From Zygnema circumcarinatum SAG 698-1b (Eukaryota > Plantae > Zygnematophyceae): a stretch of 64,000 nucleotides of DNA. The DNA is taken from NCBI GenBank assembly GCA_037447605.1, contig CM074819.1, forward strand, positions 558,001-622,000, in the 5' to 3' direction. Of this stretch, positions 21,570 to 46,400 are shown in pieces. The position numbers and the translations under genes are program-made. How positions within the stretch are numbered: the first letter of the stretch is position 1; each line of letters begins with the position of its first letter. Below the pieces are notes generated by a model that did not search any database, had not been told where the DNA came from, and was given only the letters and a program-made list of their open reading frames with translations.

Positions 21570-21720
21570 CTCGAAACTTTGAACCCTGAACCCTATTCGT
21601 TGAACCCTAAACCCTGAACCTCAAGCCCTGAACCCTAGACAATGAACCCTGAACCCTAGACCCTAAACCCCTAACCCTAAGCCCTGAACCCTGAACCCTG
21701 AACCCTGAACCCTACCCCCT
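21570..21720. repeat. Degenerate telomere-like (AAACCCT/GAACCCT)n array immediately upstream of ATG 21731
   Basis: Repeated aaccctaa and aaccctga units. Confidence 0.85.
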
Positions 21721-21730
21721 GACTCCTGCA

Positions 21731-24700: not shown

Positions 24701-27679
24701 TACTTCGTTCGTCCTGAATGGCGACCAAATGAAAGAAGGAGGAGAAGGGAGGCAGATATGGCTGCCCGGGATGGAAAACCTCCCTGCTGGAAAGAGTCTT
24801 GCCAACCCACTACCTTTGATGATCTAAGGAAAGAATATGGGGGAAAACCGGAAAGAAGAATGTTTAGATTCAAGCTGCCCGGAACGAGAGAGGGCCCTGC
24901 GGGAGAGAAGAAGGAGAAGTGGAAGATGTATGAGTATACACTCAAATCGGATGCGGAGATGTATGAAGATAGGAGGAATGGGTTGCCAGTATGGGTCATA
25001 TGTAAGGTGGTGAGAGAGGGACCTATGACGATAGATGAGATCGAAGAGCATGAGGAGAGGATGGGAGGGAGTGGTTTTCCTGGCAACGGTAACGGAAATT
25101 TCTTTAACGGAAGTTTAGGGAGAGGTTTTGGGGTTCAGGATGGGTCATCTTCGTCGGGTACAGGGGGTTCAGGAGTTACAGGTTCAGGACATAACTATGG
25201 AGGAGGGTTTGGAGGAGGAGCAATGCAGTATGGGTTGATGCATGCAGGAGGAGAGGTAGGGGAGGGAGTGAAGGGTTCAGGAGTCTCTCTTAACCCTAAA
25301 ACCCTGAACCGGGGGTTAATAGAATGGTTGCAGTCAGTGCCCCCCCCTCCCGCTCTGAAAGATCGAAGGCTGAGTGGTCTAGAGAGTAACAATCCGAAGG
25401 GATTGGCTGCTCTTTTACAGAACGTGTTGGCTGGGAGAGTGGGAGGAGAGAGAGAGAGAGAGAGGGAGAGAGTGACACCTGTTGCTGGATGGATGGCGGG
25501 ATTCCCAGATGCTCAGAAGGTAGTGGGAGCTCTACTGGAAGACTTCTTTGTTAGTAAGCTGGTGGTGAAGTTGAGACCGGTGGAAAAGGGAGAGAGAGGG
25601 GGAGAGAGAGGAGAGAGAGGGGGAGAGAGAGGGGAGAGGGGGTTGCAACCTCCGAGCTGGAGGAGAGCCCTCACAGATGAAGACTGGAAAAGGAGAGAGG
25701 GAGAGGGAGAGGAGGAGGAGGAAGAGCTCCCTCCCGAAGATTCAGAAGAAGAAGATTCGGAAACTGAATGCGAATTTGACGAAGAAGATGGATCATTCAA
25801 ACCCATTTCTGGGAGCGAATTAGATTCACTCGCTACTAACATGCTGACCGAAGTGAAAAACTTATCTAACGCACTTGCAGCTTCCTCAGAAAAAGAAATT
25901 TCCGGTCGGCTGAAAGGTTTTCTCTCACAAACTTCAGTTGTTCTCTCCGAGTTCATTAGCCAGGCGGGACGTGACGAACCGGCTGCCCAACTTTGGCTCG
26001 AGTCACTTCAGGACAGTCTGAGTAAAGTTCGGGCAGTGATAGAGAGCTTAGCAGGTGACTCACAATCGAGAATTTTTTTACTCGTAAAAAGTCCGGAAAT
26101 GGCCATTCAGGCTCAGACAGCTGTCAGACGATTAGCTCATGTTCTCTCTCTCCTTCCAAATGTACATTTGGATTTTATGTCGGCAGATGTACGGCGACAA
26201 TTGGGTGAGCTAAAAGGGGCTATGGTGAGTGAAAATTTTGCTCCCATGGCTTCTACAGTGAAAGCTCTGAGTAAACTTCTTCAGATAGCAGTGAATGGAG
26301 GGAAATTGGGAGGTCAAGGAGAGGATGAGAAGGGAGAACATACGGAAAAAGTCGAAAAAAATCGCGATTTCGATTTCAGTACTGACGATATTGCGGGAAT
26401 CAAAGCTCTGAATCAGTTGAAGGAAGCTTTACTGGGATTTTCAAACAATTCGGGTCCGAAAAATTTCACGTATCCGTCCCCTGTGATGAGTAATCTTGTG
26501 ATTGAAGTGTTTTCTCTCGTTGGGGTTGAGTGGGACTCTTCCGCGGTTGAGATAGAATTGGAACGACTCGAGAAAGTTTCGGAAGGCGAGAAAAAGAAGA
26601 AAATTGTGGTGAAAAATGTGAAGAAGGAGGAGGAAGAAGATGCAGCTTTGGCTGAGGGAGTGATCGCTTTATTGAAAGCATTCTCTTCAGGAGGTGCAGT
26701 TACCAACATGGAACAAGAAGAAATGAAAGGAGTAGAGAAGAAGGGGAAAGCAGTCGATTTCGACATAGAACTGCCGTTGCCAGCTCCGTTAGTCTACAGT
26801 TGCAGAGTGTTCAGCCAATCCGAAGTGGATAGTGTACAAGGAGAGAGGGTACAAGACGTGCTTTCAGGAAACTTGAATGGAGTTCCCGTAAGTTTGGTAT
26901 ATGTAGACCAAAACAAAGTTTCTGAAATCGCATTACACCGAGAAGTAGAAGCTGTGGCAGCAATTCGGCATCCAAATATCGCCTCTCTGATTGGCTGCTG
27001 CCCAGAATCAGCCTGCTTAGTCTATGAGAAACTGCCACCTGGCAGTTTAGAAGACTACCTACAACAGTCTGCCGGAACTCCCCGTTTCCCAGAAATTCCT
27101 CTCTCCTGGTCAACCCGATTCCGAATCATCCACGAAATTGCCTCTGCTTTAGCCTTTCTCCACGACCGAAAAGTCCTTCACCGTGATGTACGACCTGCAA
27201 ACATCATGATAGGCTGGGAATCCCCACAAACCCTAAAAAATGGACCCAAAAACTGGCCTGTTGAACAGACCCCCGGAGCAACAATAGTGAGCAAACTTGC
27301 TAGAGTCGGAGTAGCTGCTCTTGGACGAGAACATGAACCCGGAAAAACCCCCATGGATGTAGATGGTCTATATCTCGACCCCGCATTTGCTCGCTCAGAA
27401 TGCTTCTTTGTTCCTGCTGCCGATGTATATGCATTGGGAGTTATTATGGCCCAACTTTTGACCGGCCGCCATCCCCCCAGTGCGGTCAGAGCGGTCGCCT
27501 CCGCCTTTGACGGAGGCAGAAAAACGGTCCAATCGGTCTTAGACGGGCGGGCGGGGGAGTGGCCATTGAGAGAGGCGGAGGAGGTAGCGCGGGCCGCGTG
27601 GAGGTGTTCGATGTTGGAGAGGGCGGCGAGGCCGGAGTTAAAGGAGGTCCTGCCGGCGCTGGCGAAGGTGAGGGTTTAG
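21731..27679 (+). CDS. Multidomain fusion protein (~1250 aa): coiled-coil/leucine zipper - divergent NAC domain - MLKL-NTD/UND-like helical bundle - RLCK-IX/PUB-type pseudokinase
   Basis: Exons 21731-22024, 22921-23172, 24030-24228, 24660-27679 are in phase. NAC motifs: IPRGIRFAPTDVEVFDYLSRKL, IPEVELLKFPRPWHLP, FYFVRP, CWKES, KWKMYEYTL, WVICKV. The same ORF continues to a helical bundle (LQDSLSKVRAVIE..SRIFLLV..LAHVLSLLP..SADVRRQL) and a kinase fold (IRHPNIASLIGCCPESACLVYE, LSWSTRFRI, HRDVRPANI, YLDP, DVYALG, WP..EAE). A possible AAG|GTGAG donor at 27667 may add a short last exon at ~28871. Confidence 0.85.
22045..22620. repeat. Degenerate telomere-like (TTTAGGG/TTCAGGG)n array in intron 1 of the fusion gene
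   Basis: Repeated gggtttag, gggttag and gggttcag units over about 570 bp. Confidence 0.85.
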
Positions 27680-28745: not shown

Positions 28746-29538
28746 TTTGAGGTTCAGTTCAGCTTAGCTCAGTCAGTTCACTTCAGTTCAGTTCAGTTGC
28801 GTTACATGCCAAAAATAACATCTGAACTCTCTATGCTGATTGATGATGATCTGATGTTTGCGGGGTTCAGGTGGCGGCGAATTGCTGATTCCTGAAGTGA
28901 TTTACGGAGGCGATCCGTATCCATGTAACTATGATAATTATGACAGTTGGCAGGTTTTCGGATTCACATGCGATGCATAAGAAAGGTTTACAGTTCAAAA
29001 AAGTAACCGTGTACCTATCTGAGGGTCTTTTTTTTTTTTTTCCCTTTTTTTTTTTTATCAGCCATGTACTGCCCAATTTCTTGGCCCTGGTGGTTGGTGG
29101 AGAAATTTAGGGTTTAAGGTTATACTTGGAATTTTAAGTTTAGGGGTTAGGGTTCAAGGCTCTGGTCTGTTGTATAGTAAACTTGGCATCAGAGGCTCAG
29201 TTTAAGGTATGAAACTTGGTTGAATGGGGATGTTGAATCAAGAAAAAGAGGTGGGTGTGAACAGGGAACATTTCTGAGCCTGTTTAGACTTGAAAACCTC
29301 GTCATCATTAGAGAAATTTATCTATATTTTATGTCTTGTGTGCTTTCGTTACGTTTGACTGAACCTCAAACCCCACATTATATAAAACCTCAACCCTAAA
29401 CCCCAAACCTTGAAACCTACCCCTTTATAAACCCTTAAGCCTACTCTACATCAACCCTACCCTGTAAACCCTAAACACCCACTCTGTTCCCTTCGCCCTC
29501 CCTCCGTCCTTTTTTGAATGCAATGTTTTGTTGCTCAC

Positions 29539-31775
29539 CTGCCTGACAGAAAATTTAACGCAGGGTAAATCTGACGTGAAATGAACATTCGACCCTCAAT
29601 TGTGTTCCTCCAATGGATGTGTTTTCTAGTTGCTCAATTGAACTTGAATATACGTAATAATAATATAAAAAAGGTGTGTAAATAGCACTCTCCTATATAT
29701 AATACTACAACTTAAATATGCGCATAGAAAAAGGCAAACTGAATCGACTTCCCAACAGTTCATGGTCACACCAATTGTTATTATTATGGAAGGACAATGT
29801 CCAACGTTTCAGAACCATTTCAGATTTGCCAGAATAACAGAATGTAACAGAATGTAACAGAGGAGAGAGCGAGAGAGAGAGAAGAGAGGGAGCGGGAGAA
29901 CGATTGAGGAGACACAGACCATTTGTTCCTCCCCGTTCTCCTCCAAATCATCCATAGGAAACTGTGTATATGTGCATACATTATTTACAGAATCGACATC
30001 GCTGCAGAGTACATTTGGAAACAACCCTAAAACCCGACAAACGTTCGCATCCCTGAAACCCTCAAATTCTCAAAATGGAGAGCAATACGTAACTGGAACG
30101 TAGCTTAAANNNNNNNNNNNNNNNNNNNNNNNNNNNNNNNNNNNNNNNNNNNNNNNNNNNNNNNNNNNNNNNNNNNNNNNNNNNNNNNNNNNNNNNNNNN
30201 NNNNNNNNNGAAGAGAAGAAATGAGGATAAAGAGAGGGAGGATGAATGGAGGAGAAAATTGAAAGGATACACAGAAAGTGGGCCGGACTGCTGCTTCAGG
30301 AAAGTTTCCAGCCAATTCCAAACCTCCCATTCCTGAAACATGGGAAGCCCTCCCACTCCCTCCCTTTCTCCATCCAACGATTCTCTCCCTCCCTTTCTCA
30401 TTCCCTTCCTCACGTTTCTCCCTTCGACCACTTCGTCCTCTCCCTCCCCTCCATTTCCAGAAAAGCTTTCATAAAACGTTGCTTTTCTTCTCTTCAGAGG
30501 TTGGAAAGAGAAATTTGCCCTCTCTCTCTCTTCCTCCGAACTACCCTCCATCTCCGTATCAATTAAGTGCTCTATTTTTGGCTGAATTTCACTTTCTTTG
30601 ATCTTAGTTCTTTTTGCGCTCCTATACTCCTCTCCTCTATCTCCTTCCTTCGTTCCTTCCACCTCCCTCTCCCTCAACCTCTCCCTCTCCCTCTCCTCCT
30701 CTTCAGATGGCCCTCTCTGTCCAAAAAGCCACCTTTGGCCTATTCGAGAAACTGCGAAAACCAAAAAGCATCTAGAAAAAGAAAAGGGTTAAAATAAAAA
30801 GAAATAGGAAAGAAATCACTGAAAATAAATAGACCCAAATTTACCCAAATGTAAAATCAACCAAGGGAAAAAACCCAAAGTAAGAAACAAAAAAGTCTAA
30901 TCATGTCCCATGTACTCACATGTTGAGATAATTGGCAGAGAAAGTGATTTTCCGACCACAAACTCACGTTTCCTCCTCCCACTCTCTCTCTCTCTCCCTC
31001 TCCCCTCCTCCCTCCCACCCTCCGGCTCCTTCTTCAACCTCCAACCCCTCCTCTTACTTTTCCTCCGCCCTATTCCGACCTCCGCCTCCCTCTCTCCCTC
31101 CCCTTCTGCCTCCTCCCTCTCCTCCTCCCTCTGCCTCTCCCTCTCCCTCTCTTTCTCCCTAACTCTCTCAACCCCTTCTTCAACGATTTCTGATTCTTTA
31201 CACTTTTTCGTATTTTGCGGAATTCCAAAATCTCCTTTCGGAGTTTTTGTATATGCCCTTTTACGGTTTAATTTTTCCGTAAATAGCGTTCCATGTCCCG
31301 TTAACATAAGAGCCCTTATACCACTACTAGGTCTCCCACCACTCTCTCTGACAGAGGGAGAGGAAAGGTCCACTCTCACTACCTCCACTCCCGCACAGAG
31401 GGAGGTAGCTGTGCCAGGGAGAGGAGGGACAGAGAGAGGGAGAGGAAGCCGTGAAGGTCTTAAATCAATAGAATTAAATTCGGAAAAAATCTCTTTGAAT
31501 TTATAAGGGAGGGAGAGGGGGGTGGGAGGGCTCCATGAGTATAAAGGCCAAGGGGAGTCCCAGCTTCTCTGTCTCTCTCCCGCTCCCACTCCCTCTCTCT
31601 GTTCTCTCCACTCTCTCCCACCTCTCTCCTCTCTCTCTTCTCCTTTCTGTCCCTCTCCCACATCTCCCTGCAAGGAGGAGTGGCCGTACGGAAACCACTT
31701 AAGGGCACCGCTGCCCAAACTGGCGGCGAGAATTGCTTTCCCTGCGGAGAGAGAGAGAGAGAAGAGAGAGAGGGG

Positions 31776-31811
<36 letters not shown>

Positions 31812-32201
31812 GAGAGAGGGAGAGAGAGAGAGAGAGAGAGAGAGGGAGCGAGAGAGAGAGAGAGGGAAAAAAGAGTGAGGGCGGCGAGAGAGAGTGAGAG
31901 AGACACGTGAATAAAAGAAAAGCAATGAAAGGAAAGTCTGTAAACTAAAAAAAATTGCGATGGTGAAAAAGAAGGGAGAAAGGGCGGGAATGTCGAGGGC
32001 GGAGGTGCAGAGGAGGCCAGAAAAGAGGAAAGGGAAAGGGGGAAATGGGCGGGGAAGCGAGGGAGGGGCAGGAGAGAAAGAGAGAGAGCGAGAGTGTGAA
32101 AGAGTGAGAGAGGAGAGCGAAAAAAAGAAAGAGGGGGTGAAAAAGAGAGAGACAGAGGGCGAGAGAGAGTGAGAGAGAAAGTGCGAGAGGGAGGGGGAGA
32201 A

Positions 32202-32233
<32 letters not shown>

Positions 32234-32666
32234 AAAAGAGAAAGAGAGAAGGGGTGAAAAAAAGAGAGACGGAGGGCGAGAGAAAGCGAGAGAAAGTGAG
32301 ATAGGGACGGAGAAAGAGAGAGACAGAGAGAAAGAGCGAGAGAGGGCGAAAGAGAGCGAGTGACTGACCATGGCAGCACACGTGTGACAGTTGTGACCGT
32401 TTTGCAGTCCGATGACATTCACATTCGGAGTAAATTTTGAGCAGTCGGGGCACCTCCTGCATGCGGTGCTCCCACTGCCCAAAATAGAAAAAAATCCCCC
32501 CAAAGAAAGAGATAGGGACACGATAGTAGAGGTAGTGAGAGAGATAAAGGTAGCGATAGGGACACAAGGGAAATATTACACGTCAAAAAAAAAAGGGGGC
32601 TCTACCCCTCCTTAGCCCCATTTTCCTCCACTCCTACCTCTCCTCTCCATTCTTCTCCCTCCCCTG

Positions 32667-32709
<43 letters not shown>

Positions 32710-34452
32710 TCAAACACAAACACACACAAAGGGCTCTACTAACCCTCCCCTTTGTGAATTTCCTATCCCCTTCGCCCATCTCTGTCACTCTCTATAACTC
32801 CTGCTGCTCCTCTTTCCTCCCTCCCTCCCTTTTCCTCCTTCCCTCTATCCCCTCTCCCCCTCCCACCTTTCTCTCACTCCCTCTCTCTCTCTCTCTCCCC
32901 CTACCTGCAGCAGCGGCATATTATATCTCCGAAGGTCATATAACAAAATTGTTCGAGTCGTTCCGACAGAAAATTCGAAGGACTGCCCGTCCCTTGCAGT
33001 CGCTAAAGCCCAAATGCGGCCCAAATCTGAAAAAATTCGTTCTTTTTCTTTGCTGCCCGGCTTATCGGCATCGACCTTTACTTTTTTCTCGTTATGATTT
33101 TCCATGTCCACCAACACTGTGGGGGCAGGAAAAGAATCTGCAAAAAAAGGGGAGAGAGAGAGGAGAAACTGCTTAATATTGAAGGAAGTTTGGTTTGAAT
33201 TCATTCATTGTCTCCCGCACACTCTCTCTCTTCTCTCCCTCCTCTCGCCCCCCCAACCTGCTCTACCCAATTCTCTCTTCTCTCTCTGTCTCTCCCTGCT
33301 CTTTTTTCCCTTCGCTTTCTCTCTCTCTATCTCTCCTTCTCAGCCTTCCCTCTCCCACCCTCCAACCTCTCCTCTCTTCCTCCTCTCCTCCTCGCCTCCT
33401 CTCCTCCTCTCCTCCCCTCCTCTTCTCCTCCCCCTCTCCTCCCCCTCTCCTCCCCCTCTCCTCCTCTCCTCCCCCTCTCCTCCNNNNNNNNNNCTCTCCC
33501 TTTCCTCTCCCTCTCCTCTCCCTCTCCTCCCCCTCTCCTCCTCCTCTCCTCCTCTCCTCCTCTCCTCCTCCCTCCCTTGCTTCTCTCCTCTCCCCATATC
33601 TTACCAGTCCCCGGCCGAGCCGGAGTCCGCAAGTCGACCAGTAAAATATTTCGCGAATTTCCAACTAACAAATTTCTCGGATTCCCTCCCGAAAACTCGC
33701 AGGTCCACCAAAGTTGATCTCCTCCCGGAGGGTGGATCCCCCCGATTTCTGAATTTCGAGTTGATCCAAAACTTTGCGCAACTCGGGTTTTTACCGAAAA
33801 ACCGCTAGACCGCACTTTCGTTTTAGGGCCCATTTTTTTCAAGTTGGATTTTGAAGTTCCAAAATCCGTATTTTTGAGATTGCCTGCTTCGATATCAAGG
33901 AGATGGAGTTTTCCAGTCTCCAATATGACAGCGCTTTGACCTAAAAAATTAGGGTTAAGGGCCACCTGAACCCTCCAGTGCAAATCACCCAAAAAGGAAA
34001 ATGTGATTTTTCTTCAAATGGGGCGATGGTTTTTCAAAAAATGTGTCTTGATTGGGTCCGAACGGATTACAGAACTATTTACGGAATTGCCCCGCAGGCT
34101 CCGTCTGCTGACCTGGTTAGCAACTGCATTTCCATGTGTACTTCTCCGTAGCCCATAAAAGTTACGGAACGCGGAACTGTGACATGGAACGCACATGTGA
34201 AGGCCGCTGCTTAAACGAAACGTCTACGGCCAAGTCCGCTTGCAACTGCCCCTCCTGCAAGCAGCCAACATAGATCGACCAGTTTCAGTTCCGTTCCGTT
34301 TCGTTCTGTTCGGATTACCTTACTTTGGACCTTACAACAGAAGATGGTGTTTCCGCATGTGAGTGTGAGTGGTTTTTCTCTCTCCTAAACTCCCTCTCTT
34401 TCTCTCTCTCTCCCTCTCTCTCACACACTCTCTCCCCCGTCTCTCTCTCTTT

Positions 34453-34495
<43 letters not shown>

Positions 34496-36353
34496 TTTTG
34501 TTGCTTTGCATACACTTACACGCTCGTTCGCCACAAGAAACTTCGTCCCATATTCCGTTCGTGCTGCCACAAGCGTTTCCATGGAGGCAGTCTCAGTTTC
34601 GACCGCATCCAACGGCGTTGCAGCCAACTGCTTCCATGCGGGTAACAGCGAGGTCAGCATAGAACACGGCCGAAGACCCTCAATCTCCATGTACTTTAGT
34701 TCTGCCTTCCGTTCAGTCAACATAGTCAACACGAGGAAGATCTTCTCTTCATGAAGTCAATGAAACCAACAACGTCAACAAAGTCAACAAAGTCAACAGA
34801 AAGAACGTCCAATCAATCTTTAGTCCCATCTCTGTTCCAATCAAGTTAATGTATCAAGGAATCCATCACGTCAATCAGTTTTACCGAAAGTCAACCAAGT
34901 CAGCAAAGTCACCAAAGTCACCAAAGTCAAGGATGACACGTGTACCTGCCAGATTCGTCCTCCAAGGCAGTCGCTCAGTACCCATTTCATCAAACGGCGA
35001 TCTTCATCCGAGCCGCCTTTAGAATTCAACGGATTTCCGTCTCCGTTAGGCGCATGGAACGGGCTGCTCTCCACGTGGAGCCCTCCCGTTGAACGGCTCT
35101 CCGTTTTCCGTTGGCATAGAACGCCTCCCAGATAAGAGCCGCAGGGTCCCGCGGGAAAAAACAAAGAAATTCGACCATCTCGCCCCTAAAGAAAAAAGAA
35201 AATAAAAAAAATTAAGACTATGTCCACACCCCTAACCGGTTTGTTCAACATGATGACATGTTTGTGGTGTCTGGTTACCATTACTGCTACACTGTCATGA
35301 TAAAAGGAGGAGAGGGAGGGGGAGCGGGAGTGAGGAGGGGATATGGGTAGAGGAAGGGAGGGGGAAAGAGTGAGGGAGAGGGGAGGGGGAATGGGGAGAG
35401 AGATAGAGAGAGATGGGAGGGGCAAGAGAGAGGGAGGGAGTGTGAGGGGGAATTGGAAGGGCGAGAGGGAAGGGAGGGGCAGAGGGGGAGGGAGAGGGGA
35501 GGGGAATGGTGAGAGAGATAGAGAGAGATGGGAGGGACAGAGAGAGAGGGAGAGCGGGGGAACTGGGGAGGGAGACAGGGAAGAGAGGGGTAGAGAGAGA
35601 GGGAGAGGGAAGGGAGAGAGGCGAGGGAGGGGCAGGGGTAGTTGTACAAGTTCAATCACCCTTGAACTCCAATAACATTAACTTTCTGACTAATTGAGTC
35701 TTTCAAACATTTGAATAGACTTGATACATACTCAACAAATAGCAGATGCTAAATAAATATTCATAGGTTGATTAAAAAATTAGCAAATTATTAGTAGATA
35801 ATGATGAGTTCTCTCTCACACCTGGATGCTTTGCAGCCGGTTTCCAATGCACTGGTCCGACCTCCCCAGAGAAGAATGCATCGCCTTGGCCTCTTCAAGG
35901 TTTCCATGAAGCCCTTCGAACGGAAACGGTTCAGTTTCAGTTTCGGCTAGAAAGTCCGCGACGCGCTGTGTGAGGTGTGAACCAATCGGAGATCGAAAAT
36001 CAGCAAAAAGCTTGCTGTGAATTGGAGCAATGGTGGCTAACCAGAGAACCCTAAAATGGTAACCAGAAAACTCTACAAATCGCATGTACTTGATCAACAA
36101 AGAAACAAAGGGGGAGAGGAAGAAGAAATTCAGCAATCTTTGAATCCTTTGAAAGCCTTTCAACATTCAAACTAGTCAGTACTCCACTTCTTGATCTTAT
36201 TTAAGTTGCTGAATGTTTTAATTGGTGTTTCTTTAGTTCAATAGTTTCTCTCTGCTTAATCTTCACCTTCCCCAGGGGCTCCTCCACGTCGTCTCGAAGC
36301 TCCAAACTGTCCCCTGCGAACAGAAGCTCTCCGGCACTTCCAGCAGCCGCCAT
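29539..36353 (-). CDS. TAF1C: TAF1C/RRN6-like subunit of the RNA polymerase I factor SL1/TIF-IB (beta-propeller protein)
   Basis: ATG 36353. Exons 36353-36267, 35965-35822, 35185-34946, 34627-34520, (34330-34319), 34254-34195, 33965-33605, 33137-32905, 32474-32369, 31741-30920, 30751-30273 are in phase. Motifs match plant TAF1C-like proteins as recalled: SLFFPAG, LVAARTEYG, HVALNP..SAVILETGKLHLLDI, WTCEFSGGNPRNLLVG..ILLVDLR, ILLYDLRRYNMPLLQWEH, AILAASL..FPYG. The 3' end is uncertain: gap at 30110-30209, candidate exons ~30002-29920 and 29570-29539. Confidence 0.75.
30110..30209. other. Assembly gap (100 N, true size unknown)
   Basis: N run. Similar 100-N gaps at 42786-42885 and 55720-55819; 10-N gaps at 9646, 11771, 24386, 33484, 38516, 61701 and 63649. 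Confidence 1.
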
Positions 36354-36785
36354 GTAAACCCTAAACCCTCAACACTAAACTCTAAACCCTAAAACCATCA
36401 ACCCTGACACTGAACCCTAAACCCTAAACACTAAACCCTAAACTCTAAACACTACATCTAAGCCCTTAATCCTCGACCCTTCAACCGTTGACACTGAACC
36501 AAAGCCCTTGGACCCTAAACCCTAAAAATTGGACCCTAGAACCTTCAACCATAGAACCTTGAACTCTGCAACCTCAGACTCTAAACACTACAACCCTAAA
36601 CCCTTAGTAAGTCCCGGACCCTAACCCCTAATCCTGAACCTGAACCGTGATCGTTGCCTTCAAACCCTAACCCTGCTACCAACCTTCAACACCCCAAACC
36701 TTGAAGACTGAACCCTAATTTTCTAACCTTCTAAACCTTGAACCCTAATTTACTAACCTTAAACCCTTAACCCTTAAACCCTAAT
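36354..36785. repeat. Degenerate telomere-like (AAACCCT)n array directly abutting the TAF1C ATG
   Basis: On the minus (sense) strand it reads gggtttagggtttacATG. About 430 bp. Confidence 0.88.
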
Positions 36786-37430
36786 TCCGTGACCTCTGCC
36801 TCAATTGGAAACAATTTTTTTTTCCAACGGGAAGATAGTCGTGGACCAATCCAATCCACGTCACCGGTCATGTTCCCGTCACGGAGACGTGTCGCAACAA
36901 AAAAAAGAAAATTGCCATTTTCCAGACAATCAAAATTCCTGAAAACCAGAAACCGAAAAACTGCCATCGATTGTCTGGTTTCGGTTCGCCATAACTGGCC
37001 AATACGAGCCTGCCACGTCAGTAAATATGACTCTCTATTAAAATGTAATATAAATATTTCTGCACACGTGACGCGTTTCGATAGGGCCATTGCTAAGCTT
37101 TTTAATTTTTTTTCAAATATCGATCAAAGTGCCACGTGGAAAATAATTGTACCCGTGGCGTGTTTCTATTGGAGGTTCGTCCGTATCTGGCCCCGCCCGT
37201 ACAGTTGACATGGAACCGTTTTCGGCGGGAACCCTGCACGGTAAACCGAAATTTTGTAAGGCGCGGACATGGAAAAGCGTACATGGAAACCTCCATCTCT
37301 CTCCGCTCGTGAGGGAGAGGATTTGTAACTTTTAGTTCGATAATTTGGAATTTAAGTTTCAGCTGTAAGATTAAGTAATAAATTTGAGCTGGGCTGGGAA
37401 GTTGAGTTTTAGATGCGAGGCTGGGTGAGT
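36786..37430. promoter_or_regulatory. Putative bidirectional promoter core between TAF1C and TAF1A
   Basis: Non-repetitive segment between divergent ATGs. CCAAT-N9-CCACG at 36999-37017; CACGTG near 37064 and 37133. Confidence 0.55.
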
Positions 37431-37485
37431 AGTAGGTGGGGGTCAGGGTGGGTGGGGTGGGGTGGGGTGGGGTGGTGGGTGGGGT

Positions 37486-37521
<36 letters not shown>

Positions 37522-37740
37522 GGGGTGGGGGGGGGTGGGGTGGGGTGGGGTGGGGTGGGGTGGGTGAGGTAGATGGGGTGATGAGGTGAGTGGGGTAGAT
37601 GGGGTGAGTGATGGGTGGCTGGGGCTAGGGTTAAGGTTAGGGTTAAGGTTTCGGAATTTAAGTTTAGGATTTAGGGTTAGGGTAAGGGTTAGGTTTAGGA
37701 TTTAGGGTTAGGGTTAGGGTTAGGGGTAGGGTTTCCTTTT
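37430..37740. repeat. (TGGGG)n/poly-G tract followed by (TTAGGG/TTTAGG)n array upstream of the TAF1A ATG
   Basis: Read directly; the array ends about 15 nt before ATG 37750. Confidence 0.85.
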
Positions 37741-37749
37741 TCCGTTGCA

Positions 37750-40700
37750 ATGTCAGGGTTGCGGAGGGTTAAGAGAGAGGTGAGCGAGAGAGAGGAAGGA
37801 GAGAGAGAGGAAAGTGAGAGAGGCAGACCAGTAAGGACGAGGCAAAGAGGGAGAGAAAGCAGACCCAGGGAGAGCAGTCCTGAAGCTACCATAAGCCATG
37901 GCGCCTCTCCTCCCCCCTCCTCCCGCAAACGGAAGCTCCCTCACTCCCCCTCCCCCTCTCCCACTCGCTCTCCCCCTTCTCTCCACTTGTCCCTCTCCCC
38001 TTCCCCCCCCCACCTTCCCCACCCTCCCTCCTTCCCGCCCTCCCCCACCTCCCCTCCCCGCACCCCTCCCAAAATCCTTGGACTCCCTGAACCCTGGCCC
38101 CACATGAGGACTCAGAGAAGCCCTATCAAGAATCGGATGTTCAAAGCCCTCCATTTACATTGGGACGTGCATGAGAACTATGAGAGGCTGCGCAGGCAGG
38201 GGTTTGACTCGTACGGACCTCCCAGTTTGGGCATGGATGGCCCGCACCAAGGGCTGCTGGAGAGGATGCTGAGGGAGGCCTTGGAGGGGGAGGAGATGGA
38301 GGCGGCGGCGGGAGTGGCGGCAGTGCTGAGGCTGAGAGCGGAAGGGTTGGAGAGGAGGATGGGAGTGAACGATGGGGGATGGATAAGGACGGTGAAGTGG
38401 GGGCGGTGGAGGAAGGACGAGGTGAGATGGGGAGGGGAGGGAGGGAGGGAGGGAGGGTGGATGGGAGGGAGAGAGGGGAGGGAGGGAGGGAGGGAGGGAG
38501 GGAGGGTGGATGGGTGGTTGGAGGTGCAGAGGATANNNNNNNNNNGAGGGAGGGTGGATGGGTGGTTGGAGGTGCAGAGGATATGGAGGGAGGGAGGGAG
38601 GGTGGATGGGTAGGTGAAGGGGCAGAGGAGATGGAGGGAGGGAGGGAGGGAGGGTGGATGGGTGGGTGGAGGGGCAGAGGAGAGGGAGGGAGGGAGGGAG
38701 GGAGTGTGGAGGATGGAGGGGGGGGAAGGGAAGCGAGGGGATGGGGGGAGGACGGGAAGAGGATGAGGGTAGGGAGAAGAGGGAGGAGTGAGAGAGGGTG
38801 AGACAAGTTGGGGAAGGGAGAGATAGGGGAGAGGGAGGGCGAGAGGGAGGAGAGATGGGGGAGAGGAGGGGGAGACAGAGGGCGAGCGGGAGGAGGGAGG
38901 GAGTGGGGGGTGGGGGATAGGGGGATAAGTAAAAGGGATAGCAAATGGATGGAGAAACTGATGCTAGGAGGGGAGGGATCTCTTATGGCACTTTTTGTTT
39001 GAGAATTGTTTTACGCGTTGCTCACGGACTCTCTCGCTGTCTCTCTCTCTCTCTCTTTTTGTTCTGGGGGGGGGGTGGAGGAGTAGTTTGCAGTTGACAT
39101 TGGCCTACGGGCAGGTCTAAGAAACTTTCCCCCATCCCAAGTGGAGAACTTCTTTAAGTCCCTCCATCGTACGACTATTGTAAGTGCCTTTTCTCTTTAC
39201 TGCTTTTGTGGATATTTTAGCCAAGTCCCGAAACAAAGTTTACACCAATTTCCTTTTTTGGGTTGATAGGGATTCTAGAATTGTATTGAACTTTTGGGTT
39301 CGTTTTTGTAGGCCCTTTTTAGGGATGCATGTTTTTTTCTTTTGTTTTTTTGCTTTTGGTCAACCTTTAAAATTTGAAGAAGGTTTGTGGAAAGATTTAG
39401 GGTAATGGATTTTTGTATGCAGGTAAAAAATCCAGTTTTAATTTCAAAACAAGCCCAACTGGAAAAGATTCTTGGATGCTATTATTTGGAGGAGGGCTAT
39501 TTGGATGAAGCTTTTGAGAGGTTCCGAAGGTGAGAGAAAAGTCATTAAATTCTAATTGGCACACTTTTTCTGCCTTCTCTCTCTCTCTCTTTCCTTTTTA
39601 CTCGCTTTGTATGTCTTTATTTCATCTCTACATTCTCCCTCTCTCCCTTTCCCTCGCCCTCCAAACTTGCTCCCTCTATCTATCTCTCCTTTTCTCTCGT
39701 TCTCACTTTCCCTCACGCTCTCTTTGCTCGTTTCCTCTCCCGCCCTCCCTCTATTCCCCTCCCTCCCTCCCTCTATTCCTCTCCCTCCCTCCCTCTATTC
39801 CTCTCCCTCCCTCCCTCTATTCCTCTCCTGCCCCAGCTCCAAGCCCTTACCCTCTCTATCCCTTTCCCATGTCTTCCTCATCCCACTCACTCAAAGTCCT
39901 TCCTTTCATTCCCCTTCTCTACACCCTCCCCCTCTCTCCCCTCTTCCCCTTTCCCCCTTCCCCTCCCCCTCCGCCTTTCCTCCTTCGCTCTCTCTCTCTC
40001 TCCCTCTCCCCCTTCTCCTCCCCCTCCCTCTACTTCGCCTTCTCCCCCTCTCTCTCTCTCTCTCCCATCCTTATGAACTGACTCATGCAGCTCTGCACTT
40101 CTCATTCTCAGCCCTTGTTGCTGCGCTGCATGTAAATCTTCCCTACCATCTCTAACCCATTCATTCTATGTCTCTCTCTCTGTGTTCCTTTTGCCTTTGT
40201 TTTTCTGTCGGTCATGTTCTATTCTCCGTTTTCATTCCGTTCCGTTCGCCGTTCCGTTCCGTTCCGTTCCGTTCCGTTCCGTTCTGTTCTGCAGTAATGC
40301 AGCGTCCCTTGTCAAAACTGACGGCGGCCACACACACTTTTTGGCCGGCCTGACCGCTCACCGTCTATGGCGAAAGGAAATTTTGAGGGTCTACCCGGAG
40401 AATCGGGCAGACCGGCCGGGCACAGAAAAAAATTGCGCAGAGGGTAGCTGTGAAAAATGTTCCGGTGCAAAGGTTCAAGCGGACGAGCATGGCGACAAAA
40501 GCAGTTTGAATGCGGCGTTTCTATGCGACTGGGTTGACGGAAAATGGCAGGAATCTCTGTGCATGGAACGGGAAGTGCGTAGTTTTCCGTTGAACGGAAA
40601 CCTGAACGCGGACATGGATGAGGGTGTCAGAGCCAGCCAATCAGAATGGCTGGACGAGATACAACCCGATTCGGAAATGGTTGTTTTGTGTAAACCAGGT

Positions 40701-41440
40701 AAAGTAGGCAAACCTTAAACTCTAAAACCCTAAACCCTAAACCCTCAAACCCTAAAAACCCTAAACCCTAAACCCGAAAAACTCTAAACCCGGAACCCTA
40801 AACCATAAAAACTCTAAACCCTAAAAGCTCTACAAACCTTAAACCTTGAAACCCAAAAAACCTTAAATCTTGAAACCCTAGAAACCCTAAAAACGTCAGA
40901 CCTTGAAACCCTAAATTCCACATGACTCGCAAGTTTTCGGACCTCTGAAACAATATTTTTTCTCTTGGAAAGAAAAATGTCACCAGCTTCCAAGGTTTCT
41001 AGCCTTTCTCTAGGGTTCAGGGCTCGTCTAAAAACTTTCAAAATCTCGATATTTTGCTTTTCAAACCGTTCCTTTCTGCTGAGGCCAAAAAGTCAAACTC
41101 CGTCAACGGTCAACGGGGTTGCAGATATGGACGTTGACCTTTTTCCGTTCCGTCTGCCGTCCACATGGAACGGTCAACCGTACCGTCTGAAGTCACAGAA
41201 ACGACAAAGCCAGTGGGGGCAGGAGGCGCGGAAACATCTGACGGAAAGCGTGAAACTGTGTCCGTACAGGCAGGCGGACCTCCTCCCGTTGGTGCAGGTC
41301 AGCTCGGGTTTAGGGTTTAGGGTTTAGGGTTAGGGTTAGGGTTGAGGGGTTAGGGGTTAGGGTTTAAGGGTTAGGGTTTAGGGGTTAGGGGTTAGGGTTT
41401 AGGGGTTAGGGATTAGTGGTTAGGGGTTAGGGGTTAGGGG

Positions 41441-41473
<33 letters not shown>

Positions 41474-42770
41474 TAGGGGCTAGGGTTTAGGGTTTAGGGT
41501 TTGGGGTTTGGGGTTTGGGATTTAGGGGTTAGGGGTTAGGGTTTAGGGGTTAAGTTTAGGGTTTAGGGCTAGGGCTAGGGGTTAGGGGTTAGGGGTGAGG
41601 GTTATGGGAATTGGTACTTGGGGTTTAGGGTATTGCATTCTATACGGTCGCTTCATTTTGATTAATTTGTGATTATTCTTGACAGTAACAATAAGAAGGA
41701 TTTTGAGTTTAATTAATAGATTACACCAATCAAAACGATCGAACTACATGTCTATTTTCTTATGTGAAATTTCAGATTCTTTTGGCGGATGGAGAGGTGG
41801 CAGAGGCAGTTGCAGTCACTCGTTGGGTCTGCTCAGCCTCCCAAACAGCTTTTCCGTACAGGTGGGAGACAAAGGGGGAGAGAGATGGAGAGAGAGGGCG
41901 GGATGGGGAGAGAGTCAGGGGAGAGGAAGAGGGTAAGAGGGGAAGGGAGAGACGGGGAGAGGTAGAGAGTGAGAGGGAATGGAGTGGGAGAGAGCGATTG
42001 GATAGGGGCAGTGAGAGTGGGGGGTGAGAGTGTGAGATAAAGGAGAGAGGATAGAGTGAGACAGCAAGATGGGAAGGAACGAGAGCGGGGGAGGGCAGGA
42101 GGCGAGTAGGGAGAGTGAGAGTGCGAGAGGAAATCGAGAGAAAGTGGGCAGAGAGAGAGTGAGAGAACAGAGAACGAGAGGCCGAGGGCGAGAGGGAGGG
42201 GGGAGAGAGAACACGAGAGGGAGAGAGGAGAGACGTAGAGGGGGACAATCAGAGGTGGGGAAAGAGTAAGCGACGGAGAGTAGGAGTGGGAAAGAGGGAG
42301 GAGGCGAGAGAGACAGAGCACAGGAAGGAGAGAACTAAAGAGAGAGTGGGGAAAAGAGAGAGATATTAGAAAGTGACATTGGGAAAAGGAGAGAGAGCGG
42401 GAAGACAAAGAGAGACGAGAGAGAAAGGGTGTGACTTATAGAGAGTGGGGGTAGTGCTCCTATGCTAGATTCCCATTCCTCTCATCTCTCGTTTCCTACT
42501 CTCCTCCCTCTCTCTCTCTCGACCTATCTCTCTCTCCGTTCCTCTCACTCTCCCCCCTCTTCTCCCTCTCGACCTCTTTCTCTCTCCGTTCCTCTCACTG
42601 TCCCCTCTCTTCTCTCTCTCCCTCTCTCCCTCCCAGAGTACTGTCCGACCTCCTTGAAGCTTCGGCTTCGAACGATCCCTCCGCCCTCGCTCTCGCCAAC
42701 CTCTCTCTCCTAAAGTTGGAGCCAACCGCAGGCTTTGCCGTGCACCGTCTCATGCATCTTCACTCCCAAG
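37750..42770 (+). CDS. TAF1A: TAF1A-like subunit of the RNA polymerase I factor SL1/TIF-IB (TPR-like helical protein); 3' end lost in or after a gap
   Basis: Exons 37750-38391, 39087-39179, 39423-39529, 40295-40698, 41014-41297, 41776-41861, 42637-42770 are in phase. Motifs match plant TAF1A-like proteins as recalled: LERMLREAL...EAAAGVAAVL, THFLAGLTAHRLW, DMDVDLFPFRLP, EARKHL..LLPLVQILLADGEVAEA, LLKLEP..AVHRL. Confidence 0.75.
40710..40915. repeat. Intronic telomere-like (AAACCCT)n array
   Basis: Lies in TAF1A intron 40699-41013. Confidence 0.88.
41306..41630. repeat. Intronic telomere-like array of mixed TTTAGGG/TTAGGG/TTAGGGG units
   Basis: Lies in TAF1A intron 41298-41775 and is the least degenerate array in the window. 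Confidence 0.92.
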
Positions 42771-43463
42771 GTGGGGTCTCTCTCTNNNNNNNNNNNNNNN
42801 NNNNNNNNNNNNNNNNNNNNNNNNNNNNNNNNNNNNNNNNNNNNNNNNNNNNNNNNNNNNNNNNNNNNNNNNNNNNNNNNNNNNNATTGAGACTTGATTT
42901 GCTGCGCTGCATCCTGAACATGTCATGTATACTTGAACGGCCTTTCCTTTGCTCACATACTACGAATACGTCTCAGTTAGCAGTAATTTTAGAAAACAGT
43001 GTCACTATATACAAACTGCTTATCCGTGTAAAGCATTCGAGGGCCCAGGGGCATCAAAAACCAAAACAGTTCATACGATGAAAAGTGATGCTACACAAAC
43101 AAAGACGGGATATACTAGGAATGGTTGCCTATCAGTAGGTGAACAGCTACAGCCGTGACTCTGACTCTGCCACTAGGATGTGGGAGTCTCGTTTTACCAC
43201 CAACACTGCATTCCACCTTAAGATAATCCTGTTAGGCCCGCATTCCCTTTATGAGATCAATCTGAAAGCAACAACCATCCTAATGCTGAAGATATAGAGA
43301 GAGGGAGAGGACCTAAGTACCGCCTGCACATGGGGCTTCCCTTACAGAAAGCGAACCTCAGAGTATTCTCTACATAGGATTCGATGCACACCTTGGTATA
43401 CGGCAATTCTTGAGAAGCAGTACACCTGAGATCGGTAACATCGTTAAGCCCAAAACTTTAGGT

Positions 43464-46400
43464 TCAAGAGGCACTGGCAGTGCGTTTCCGAAACATCAAT
43501 GGCACTTGCGAGGTCACCCTTCTGCCCTGTACACACACATCATCCTCTTTTCTTGGACGGCTCGGCACCCACCTCCCTTCATTGCTGTTGTCATTGCTCC
43601 GCAGTTGTATATGTGAATTTCTCTCAGCCTTCCCATGCAAATCCAGGATACCGGGTTTCCCAACCTTCACATTCTCCAAATACTTGGCTCGATTCTGTTG
43701 CCTATTCAGGGAATCACCCATACTTCCGTCGTCCATATTACCCGCAACCCGCTCGTAGTTATCTCCTTCGCTTAACTCTTTACTTTCCATAGAGAACTTT
43801 CCGTCGGAAGGCCTCACAGAAACACGCTTCACCCAGACACCATGTTCACCAGAGATGCCAACTTGAGGAGTCTGTGCATCTGCAGAGAATGTAAGACCTC
43901 TCGATGGGACACCTCTCCTTCGTCTGTCGAAGTTGGAAGGTATCCCCTCTTTAACACCAACAAAAGGCCGAGAACGTGTAGTAAGGATAAGACTTCTCCC
44001 ATCATCTGAATGTCTCCGCTGCTGCCTCTCACTGAGAGCGGATGTGGAGACACTCTTGTAAATTCCTTGGCGTTTCATCTCAGCGATTCCACGTATGTGA
44101 GTACTATTGAGGTCACTGCCAAGACCTGGAATGGCCTCTGAGGGTGGAGACCCCATCTCCTTTATGGAAGAGTTTGAGGACAGCAAGAGTTGAGGAAGAA
44201 GGAAGGATTGGCTCACTTCAGCACCGCGATTATTAGACCAGTTATAGAAAACATCATCATCGTCGAGACAGTCTTCTTCACCATCAAACCAGCCGCCCTC
44301 ATCATCATGCTCGTCCCCACTCCGCAACTCCTGTTCGTCATCACTTTGCATGTAGCTCTCCTCCTCATCAACAGAGCCTTCCTGCGCCCCTCAGAATGCA
44401 GCAAAAACGATTAAGAGAAGCAGAAGAGAAGCAGAAGCAGATTAAGAGAAGCAGTTTTTAGTTTCAAGAAAACACAGTCACTTCCACACCTCCACCTTTG
44501 AGATACATTTTGATGAGGGCTTGACCATAGCAGGGAAACTATAGAGCGCGGGAGAGAGAAAGAAAACATCTTAGAACCAAATCTGCGGCAGATTACCTCA
44601 AGCTCGTCCATCATATACTTCTGGTCATCGTCTTCATCACTCCCATTAGTCTCCGGTTCTTCGTCACTCTCTGACATTGCAACAGCATCATCTGCAACCT
44701 GTAACATGGCGAAGAGGAGGCAGGAAAAAAAGTTTCTCACTTTCACAGTATTACAGTCGACACAGTTGAAATAAGGTATGCCGGATGGACAGGGAAACAT
44801 GGGAAGAAAGAGGGAAAAAGGACAGGAAAAAGAGAGAGAGGTAAGAGTAACGTCCAATGTATGTATCTCCTCTTGACCGCTCACCTCTTGGCTAGTGGAG
44901 CCTGTCTTCTCTGCTGAATAAGAATCCACTCCGGTAGCTTCTGTACCGGAACTACTCTCAAAAGCCAAAAGGGTTGCTCCTGTACTACTCAGTCCCTCCA
45001 CGCTGCTATTACAAGTACTGCATCCTCTAGGCTCTGTTCCACATTGGCTTAATCCATGGCCTCCAAAACGTACATGTACAGGAGAAGTGGGTCCCATTGG
45101 CCCTGAAACAAAACAAGAACTATTCTTTATGGGTCTGCGGTTTGAAGCGATTGGCCTTGGAGAGCTGAATGGCACTACCCTTTTGCCGACCATAGCTACG
45201 TCTGCCTGCCTTTCTATGATACCATCTGCCGTCATGACTTCAGGATTTATCGTCGAGTTGTCTTCACCAGAGTTTTTTGAGGGATGAAGCCCCTTGTTCT
45301 TCACATATGAGTTCCACACATCCTCCGAATCTGCTCTACTTTCTAAAGTATAAGAGCTGCCTGATGCCGATCCTGCATCTTCAAGCCCGGGCCCTGAAGT
45401 TGCTGCTGCTAATTCCTCCTGCTGCTGCTGCAAGTATGTATCACGATTAAAAAGCTGAATCGTCTCTGCAGCAGAATTAACCCCACTTTTGCCCTTGTGG
45501 TTGCAGCCTGTTGTGGAAGTTTTCTGCTTCGACGGCAAAATGCCCCCTCCACATTCTTCACAAATCGGCTGCTCGGATACGCTAAGCAGCTCGCTAGTCA
45601 GAAGTTTCGTATGAGAAAGCAACTCGCTCCTATTCATAACCTTCCCTGCCGTGGGTAACAGCACTCCTCCAGTATTTTCTATAGCTATGGGCCAAACTTT
45701 CGTCATTGGTCCATTTGCATGCACCAAAGAAAGAGAGTTTCGGTTGACCCCCTGCAACTGAATAAGCTGAAACATTCCTTTTGAGCTCCACCCCGAAGCA
45801 GCATACTGACTTTGATACTCTTCATGAATAATCGGGACTGTGTTGTGGGCCTGATCATAGAGAGTCTCTCCTGCAGCGCAACGACGAAGGCAAGCGAAAA
45901 CTGTGGCATGGATTGCAGCCACACTCTTATCAACATTTGTATTATTTACCTGCAATGAACGCACAGGAGAATGCAGAGAAAAACAATTTCACAAAATCAA
46001 TCAAATCAGTTAGTTTGGAGGAAGGCAAAGCCACAGAGGGAATTGAGAAGCAAGAAATGGAGTTACTATGAAGTAACTGTCATCCAAAACCGATCGAATG
46101 ATTGAATTCAAGTTTCAGAATGTTGTGGGCTTTTTACCTTAGGTACAAGGTGTTTGTCCGCGCGCTTGCAGAGATAATCTTGAATAGTTCGGATGTTCCG
46201 AATGTACTTCACGTACTTATTGCGAGCTGGATCAAGGGTCATATATTTGGCTCGAACAGCGAATCTCTCTAGATGCTTTGTCTCATTGCTAATGTACACC
46301 ATGAACGGGATGATGGAAGGGTGCTTTTTCATCAAACTCATCTGCACACCGAGAGCAAGGGGAAGTGGATTGCTTCAATAGACTCCTACACATTACTCCT

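Follow-up and report, generated by a model that had tools for sequence, protein, structure and literature searches.

A head-to-head gene pair in Zygnema circumcarinatum tentatively assigned to two subunits of the Pol I initiation factor SL1

Two divergent genes were delineated in a window of 64,000 nucleotides of the Zygnema circumcarinatum SAG 698-1b genome, the window being the whole stretch of DNA analysed here, whose coordinates are used throughout. The best explanation of this locus, which we hold tentatively and at less than even confidence, is that the minus-strand gene is of TAF1C/Rrn6 type and the plus-strand gene possibly of TAF1A/Rrn11 type, the two being transcribed outward from a shared core. 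We infer the start sites and the co-regulation that belong to this explanation, as well as both family assignments. Human SL1 consists of TAF1A, TAF1B, TAF1C, TAF1D and TBP, and the yeast core factor of Rrn6, Rrn7 and Rrn11; the C-terminal helical domain of TAF1C/Rrn6 contacts Rrn7/TAF1B and Rrn11/TAF1A. Taken as a whole, an SL1 pair at this locus is plausible but unproven, and it would be an arrangement of a common kind.

Organization of the two genes

The start codons proposed in the first-pass annotation, at 36353 on the minus strand and 37750 on the plus strand, were confirmed, there being no earlier ATG in either open frame. They diverge, as had been described, and are separated by 1,396 bp (36354-37749); both the ATGs and the exon chains show the genes as a head-to-head pair, on opposite strands and with their 5' ends toward each other. 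The minus gene model comprises ten tentative exons encoding at least 855 aa, and the plus gene model eight exons encoding 566 aa up to a TGA at 43079-43081. Both models are stop-free with consistent phases. Position 42770, previously taken as the end of the plus gene, is instead the donor of exon 7, and the gene runs beyond it, over an assembly gap (42786-42885), to the stop at 43081 in a probable last exon. The minus gene ends somewhere between ~30.2 and ~29.5 kb (at 29539 in the first-pass annotation). Codon usage was scored after training on the other ORFs of the window, and the six frames were compared; "first of six" below refers to the rank of the annotated frame in this score.

Exons of the minus gene, in order of transcription:
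36267..36353, minus strand: exon 1; ATG at 36353, 29 codons, donor AAG/GTGAAG; first of six
35822..36088, minus strand: exon 2, tentative; weak AAG acceptor, donor CAG/GTGTGA
34946..35185, minus strand: exon 3; acceptor TTTAG/, donor CAG/GTACAC, phase 0/0; first of six
34520..34741, minus strand: exon 4; weak acceptor, perfect GTAAGT donor; codon usage scored
33605..33965, minus strand: exon 5; beta-strand-rich propeller piece, source of the sole Rrn6_beta-prop match
32905..33137, minus strand: exon 6; continues exon 5 by way of the split codon G/AT, with a gap (33484-33493) in the preceding intron; codon usage scored
32423..32474, minus strand: exon 7; starts WEHRMQ
31622..31741, minus strand: exon 8; alternative donor at 31662
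30968..31408, minus strand: exon 9, tentative; ordinary sequence, then an E/R-rich tail; first 227 nt first of six
30210..30751, minus strand: exon 10, tentative; charged, low-complexity, open into the gap 30110-30209

Exons of the plus gene:
37750..38364, plus strand: exon 1; ~110 aa of low-complexity, basic, Pro/Ser-rich sequence, then a helical part; first of six
38391, plus strand: alternative donor of exon 1
39087..39179, plus strand: exon 2; acceptor TAG, donor ATT/GTAAGT
39423..39529, plus strand: exon 3; AQLEKILGCYYLEEGYLDEAFERF resembles a TPR helix
40295..40698, plus strand: exon 4; codon usage scored
41125..41297, plus strand: exon 5; flanked by inverted telomere-like arrays (40710-40913 and 41306-41603); codon usage scored
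41776..41861, plus strand: exon 6
42637..42770, plus strand: exon 7; donor at 42770
42993..43081, plus strand: exon 8, probable last; TGA at 43079-43081, past the gap 42786-42885, which possibly hides more exon

The minus gene product

The minus gene probably encodes a Pol I core-factor subunit of TAF1C/Rrn6 type. A Pfam search with the 138-aa open frame at 33600-34013 returned the Rrn6_beta-prop family (PF10214) with an E value of 0.25 and 10.3 bits, below the curated cut-off of 23.1; the match covers profile positions 153-245 of 375, with a per-family P of about 1e-5. It was the sole Pfam family reported for this frame, and it had been named beforehand in the first-pass annotation. The label "TAF1C-like" given there was not confirmed: the expected family was the one matched, but at a sub-threshold score and with single exons as queries. 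After exon 5 was trimmed by a few residues the match disappeared, and the other minus exons gave none in Pfam. Pfam coverage of both genes amounted to 30 exon or open-frame pieces, each searched singly, of which this borderline Rrn6 match was the only yield. The profile test was underpowered, because only single exons were queried and the proteins are very divergent.

The structural evidence hints at a beta-propeller. Of three pieces of the two genes searched in Atlas, minus exon 5 alone gave a signal, that of a generic propeller. The Atlas neighbours of minus exon 5 are all WD40-type propellers at 0.85-0.88, a result that Atlas itself rates as a lead only, and nine of the ten best named neighbours belong to one beta-propeller clan. 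They include VID27, ANAPC4, MIOS, Vps41, TFIIIC-delta and Lgl, with no TAF1C or Rrn6 among them. The AF2 model of this exon alone is all-beta, with a pLDDT of 34. The minus protein would consist of an N-terminal beta-propeller (~510 aa) with a charged tail behind it, a tentative size and layout that would suit the TAF1C type.

Sequence searches gave no closer relative. An exhaustive phmmer search of the 138-aa frame against 1.84 billion representative proteins found no relative at or above 35 bits; the only phmmer matches to the frame were two bacterial repeat proteins, which we judged spurious. Five pieces of both genes searched against the PDB with phmmer matched no Rrn6, Rrn11 or TAF chain, and a word-seeded homologue search with minus exon 9, within the 561-aa open frame at 30900-32582, returned no matches. 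This open frame is largely repeat translation.

The plus gene product

The plus gene may encode a TAF1A/Rrn11-type subunit. Its 566-aa protein appears to have a basic, low-complexity N-terminus and a helical, TPR-like body, and the AF2 model of residues 108-205 (exon 1) shows three helices with a pLDDT of 55. The earlier label "TAF1A-like" found no backing from profiles, TAF1_subA (PF14929) and Rrn11 included, in single-exon queries of low power: all eight plus exons and longer open frames, searched in Pfam at E values up to 10, gave nothing but a chance-level DUF6285. In Atlas the plus-gene pieces returned noise only, as did Foldseek with the 108-205 model against the Swiss-Prot models (E above 2), and a word-seeded homologue search with plus exon 1 had no matches. 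Putative motifs of human TAF1C and TAF1A may have counterparts, in unchanged order, in several exons of both genes; a full-text literature search for four such human TAF1A/TAF1C peptide strings found no paper.

These results bear on the leading alternative, which we consider doubtful, namely that the minus gene alone is a Pol I factor (of TAF1C/Rrn6 type) and that the plus gene encodes an unrelated, lineage-specific helical protein, paired with it without functional link. The lack of a family signal for the plus gene in any tool used speaks for it, and so do plus exon 4, which looks unrecognisable and is probably disordered, and the fact that ~10% of eukaryotic genes sit in head-to-head pairs (PMC4089025). 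However, the per-exon tests of the plus gene had little power, its protein would fit TAF1A/Rrn11 in length, in helical character and in the TPR-like sequence of exon 3, and a resemblance is suggested both by the first-pass annotation and by the human motifs, tentatively in the same order along the protein.

A second alternative, which we regard as unlikely, is that neither gene encodes an SL1 subunit, the minus gene being some other WD40-type propeller protein that matched Rrn6_beta-prop by chance. Both the weakness of that match, which lies under the cut-off and does not survive trimming, and the Atlas neighbours, which are propellers other than TAF1C or Rrn6, agree with this. On the other hand, a typical WD40 protein matches generic WD40 models first, whereas these are absent from the Pfam report for frame 33600-34013, where the only family reported was the one predicted in advance.

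Support for the gene models

All 16 introns of both genes are GT-AG with matching phases. Ten whole exons measure at least 170 nt; the annotated frame came first of six in eight of them, and in 9 of 12 rows when both halves of plus exon 1 are included. Codon-usage support is absent for minus exon 2, whose 5' border is therefore uncertain, for minus exon 10 and for the first half of plus exon 1. Probable RNA assemblies contain 47-64% of the words of 35400-38500. Several assembly gaps fall within the locus: that at 33484-33493 lies inside a minus intron (33138-33604), and the split codon G/AT is restored across it; that at 38536-38545 lies inside plus intron 1 (38365-39086), within a GGGA-rich tandem repeat; and that at 30110-30209 breaks the tentative minus-strand coding sequence.

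GA/CT microsatellites make long open frames, so that some of the exons may be non-coding, but the reading of the gene models as partly artefact, in which the 110 N-terminal residues of the plus protein, minus exons 2 and 10 and the tail of minus exon 9 are non-coding, or the genes are decaying, is very improbable: it can draw on the mostly repeat-derived 561-aa frame, the gaps and the exons lacking codon-usage support, and it has against it the intron borders and phases, the frame ranking and the RNA assemblies.

We also considered whether the exons might be dispersed repeats tied to telomere-like arrays, and rejected this because in a self-comparison of 29000-43500 against the window only the telomere-like arrays repeat.

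Comparison with SL1 and the core factor

Considering the pair as TAF1C/Rrn6 and TAF1A/Rrn11 types, the likeness to SL1 and the core factor lies in the putative propeller and charged tail of the minus protein, together with its faint Rrn6_beta-prop signal, and in the apparently helical, TPR-like character of the plus protein, as in Rrn11/TAF1A. In contrast to the known subunits, both proteins fall below the family threshold in single-exon queries and their sequences are extremely divergent. The human TAF1A and TAF1C genes lie on chromosomes 1 and 16. Neither the human nor the Arabidopsis genes are reported as neighbours, whereas here they are putatively head-to-head; Arabidopsis TAF1A is AT1G53200, an assignment supported by a published paper. 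Knowledge of the machinery with which Pol I initiates in plants and related algae is scant (PMC4209244), and if both identities are true the locus would supply TAF1C and TAF1A candidates from a streptophyte alga.

For the product of a neighbouring gene, a NAC-kinase gene, the nearest relatives come from Closterium and share 38% identity with it (the proteome of the alga itself is not in the databases). The genes around this locus in Closterium are TPT, SPX/MFS and SBF/peroxidase genes, and none of them is TAF-like.

The region between the genes

Between the two start codons, telomere-like arrays in mirror image surround a unique core:
36355..36790, no strand assigned: telomere-like array, degenerate; (AAACCCT)n on the C-rich strand, directly next to the minus ATG
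36791..37445, no strand assigned: unique core; CCAAT five times, CACGTG twice, ACGTCA twice, TGGGCT (site II-like) once, TATAAA once
37446..37621, plus strand: G-run/(GGGTG)n repeat
37622..37733, no strand assigned: telomere-like array; TTAGGG/TTTAGGG-like on the G-rich strand, stopping 16 bp short of the plus ATG

The codon-usage score is negative in all six frames of the core, and the spacer is empty in tRNA scans and in Rfam searches of the window at the gathering threshold and of 36300-37800 at E values up to 1. Under the favoured explanation, both genes would probably be transcribed outward from this core of ~0.65 kb, whose CCAAT, ACGT/G-box and site II-like motifs would form a putative divergent promoter. 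Probable RNA runs, whose label is guessed, contain 0.32-0.73 of the sampled words of the core (36800-37420), and DNA-labelled runs contain up to 0.87 of the sampled core words. As the probable RNA runs contain core words, the 5' UTRs probably extend into the core, and start sites inside the core would be consistent with this. The mirror-image arrays would then belong to the 5' UTRs of both genes, the usual place of telo-boxes in plants; the array at 36355-36790 probably lies within that of the minus gene. On this view, two subunits of equal stoichiometry would have their expression coupled by a single compact promoter region that works in both directions.

The locus resembles bidirectional-promoter pairs in its opposite strands, facing 5' ends and short common upstream region. 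It differs from them in the ATG-to-ATG distance of 1.4 kb, over the usual start-site criterion of <1 kb, and in a spacer whose unique core has telomere-like arrays in mirror image on either side. Head-to-head pairs tend toward co-expression and shared function (PMC4089025, PMC2194621). If true, the proposed pairing would be a natural case of two subunits of the same complex with a common divergent promoter; even so, it would add another functionally coupled example to the head-to-head pairs, a class that comprises about one in ten eukaryotic genes.

A stronger form of the proposal is that the genes are true TAF1C and TAF1A orthologues, that their linkage is conserved across Zygnematophyceae or wider, that the core is bidirectional and that telomere-repeat-binding factors act on the arrays; we consider this unlikely. 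If true, it would amount to a eukaryotic mini-cluster that keeps two Pol I initiation-factor subunits equal and that had come under the telo-box growth regulon before the rise of land plants.

In land plants, telo-box and site II motifs mark ribosomal-protein and translation genes and are associated with expression in cycling cells (PMC3022908, PMC3212954). The present locus is alike in having many AAACCCTA units beside both start codons and one TGGGCT in the core. It differs in that the arrays span hundreds of bases, against one or two boxes in those promoters, and in that comparable mirrored arrays also occur in introns and elsewhere: such pairs are found at 21.6/22.1 kb and, in the plus gene, at 40.7/41.3 kb, so that they may be a genomic repeat feature and not dedicated regulatory elements.

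Structure and coding support of the divergent gene pair

The window has a eukaryotic, plant-like character, and GA/CT microsatellites occur throughout it, from which long spurious open frames result. The first-pass annotation had proposed, at 29539-42770, a head-to-head pair of genes for the SL1 subunits TAF1C and TAF1A. The geometry was read correctly: two open frames have their first ATGs at 36353 (minus strand) and 37750 (plus strand) and diverge across 1,396 bp. The models of both genes were built by hand from three-frame views of the sequence, and their exons are predicted ones.

Predicted exons of the plus-strand gene (three-frame view)
37750-38364, plus strand, exon 1
39087-39179, plus strand, exon 2
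39423-39529, plus strand, exon 3
40295-40698, plus strand, exon 4
41125-41297, plus strand, exon 5
41776-41861, plus strand, exon 6
42637-42770, plus strand, exon 7
42993-43081, plus strand, exon 8

All seven introns of the plus gene, defined by these eight exons, are GT-AG with matching phases, and the predicted product of 566 aa ends at a TGA stop (43079-43081). Position 42770, previously taken as the end of this gene, is only the exon 7 donor; the gene runs on across the gap 42786-42885, which lies just after this donor and could conceal exon sequence. Another gap (38536-38545) falls within intron 1, in a tandem repeat of period 48. A (TTCCG)x10 microsatellite (40235-40289) forms the pyrimidine-rich tract immediately 5' of the exon 4 acceptor, and intron 3 holds a CT-rich tandem repeat with a 22-base unit (39754-39813).

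The minus gene comprises 10 candidate exons, from 36353 down to 30210, which join without a stop codon into 855 aa or more. The acceptors of exons 2 and 4 are weak and the last two exons are tentative, the very last being open into the gap 30110-30209, where the chain length is a lower bound only. The gap 33484-33493 is harmless to the coding sequence, because it lies in the intron 33138-33604, over which the split codon G|AT is restored. The 561-aa open frame at 30900-32582 (minus strand) exemplifies how microsatellites blur ORF-based reading in this genome: it is mostly a CT-repeat translation, yet minus exons 7, 8 and 9, which look real, lie inside it and share its frame.

Using a codon-usage log-odds score trained on the other ORFs of the window, the six frames were compared in whole exons of at least 170 nt. 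The annotated frame ranked first in 8 of 10 exons, or in 9 of 12 rows when both halves of plus exon 1 were counted separately. The core of the spacer between the two ATGs scored negative in all six frames, i.e. it is without coding signal. That the exons are dispersed repeats was ruled out, the telomere-like arrays alone being repeated within the window.

Identity of the two proteins

The minus gene is probably of the TAF1C/Rrn6 type (Rrn6 being the yeast counterpart). For the 138-aa open frame around its exon 5 (33600-34013), Pfam returned a single family, Rrn6_beta-prop (PF10214), at profile positions 153-245 of 375, with an E-value of 0.25. This is the family predicted beforehand, and no generic WD40 model was listed for the same frame. 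The score of this open-frame query against the Rrn6 profile, 10.3 bits, is below the cut-off of 23.1; the match borders on HMMER's filter limits and was lost when the query was cut back to exon 5 itself. The protein Atlas neighbours of exon 5 are eukaryotic propeller families (VID27, ANAPC4_WD40, MIOS, Vps41, TFIIIC-delta and Lgl; 0.85-0.88). The AF2 model of this exon alone was uninformative (pLDDT 34), PDB sequence searches with minus-gene pieces gave no relevant match, and one exhaustive phmmer search yielded only two bacterial repeat proteins, with scores made of stacked weak repeats. The assignment is partly drawn from motifs of human TAF1C, which may align in order with minus exons 5-9 and serve as a lead only.

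For the plus gene, we lean slightly towards a candidate TAF1A, mostly on a presumed likeness to the human protein. The first 110 or so residues of the predicted product are basic and Pro/Ser-rich; the body that follows appears helical, with a TPR-like exon 3 and an unrecognisable exon 4. Single-exon and open-frame queries matched no Pfam family, TAF1A profiles included, apart from a chance-level DUF6285 hit, and gave no relevant PDB entry; plus-gene pieces gave no Atlas signal, a homologue search with one piece found none, and Foldseek with a low-confidence three-helix AF2 model of a piece gave no signal. Strict family-membership tests do not yet allow either protein to be classed as TAF1C or TAF1A.

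These searches were weak because the queries were single exons or open frames instead of spliced proteins, the databases lacked this genome's own proteome, the available relatives are distant and Pol I factors are fast-evolving. The neighbouring 1,059-aa NAC-kinase ORF (24500-27679, plus strand) has as best relatives, for its kinase-like end, Closterium proteins of 38% identity, together with EukProt transcripts, and none of the database proteins was marked as stemming from the window itself; therefore, this is a streptophyte alga without a close annotated relative. Some relatives of this ORF combine a NAC (NAM) domain with a kinase domain, and the fusion therefore seems to exist in other Zygnematophyceae as well. 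The Closterium loci around these relatives show no synteny with the window.

The spacer and a possible shared promoter

Features of the spacer
36355-36790, degenerate (AAACCCT)n array
36791-37445, unique core
37446-37621, plus strand, G-run/(GGGTG)n, including a 125-base tract (37446-37570) about 180 bp upstream of the plus ATG
37622-37733, TTAGGG/TTTAGGG-like array, ending 16 bp before the plus ATG

The 125-base tract is prone to G-quadruplex formation on the plus strand. The core contains CCAAT (five), CACGTG (two), ACGTCA (two), TGGGCT (one) and TATAAA (one), and Rfam and tRNA scans of it gave no match. Assemblies labelled as probable RNA contained sampled core words (36800-37420) at a fraction of 0.73 in one sequencing run and 0.32-0.70 in about 12 others, and DNA-labelled assemblies at up to 0.87. 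The core may belong to long 5' UTRs, to divergent transcripts that overlap, or to a non-coding RNA not yet annotated. If the runs are truly RNA, the 5' UTRs would reach into the core, so that the start sites would be far closer than 1.4 kb, or overlapping, which would fit a shared divergent promoter. The telomere-like arrays would then lie within the 5' UTRs, the usual place of plant telo-boxes (PMC3022908).

Some 10% of eukaryotic genes are arranged in head-to-head pairs, which show a tendency towards co-expression and related function (PMC4089025, PMC2194621). Even if both identities hold, this pair would belong to that known class rather than represent a novel one; its use would be in pointing to algal Pol I factors, which are poorly known (PMC4209244).

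Mirrored telomere-like pairs occur three times in the window (21600-22280, 36355-37733 and 40710-41603), each consisting of a C-rich (AAACCCT)n array, 0.4-0.9 kb of unique sequence and a G-rich (TTTAGGG)n array. Since such pairs are also present at 21.6/22.1 and 40.7/41.3 kb, the arrays are not promoter-specific and belong to a recurrent repeat architecture of the region. The third pair flanks plus exon 5, within introns of the plus gene.
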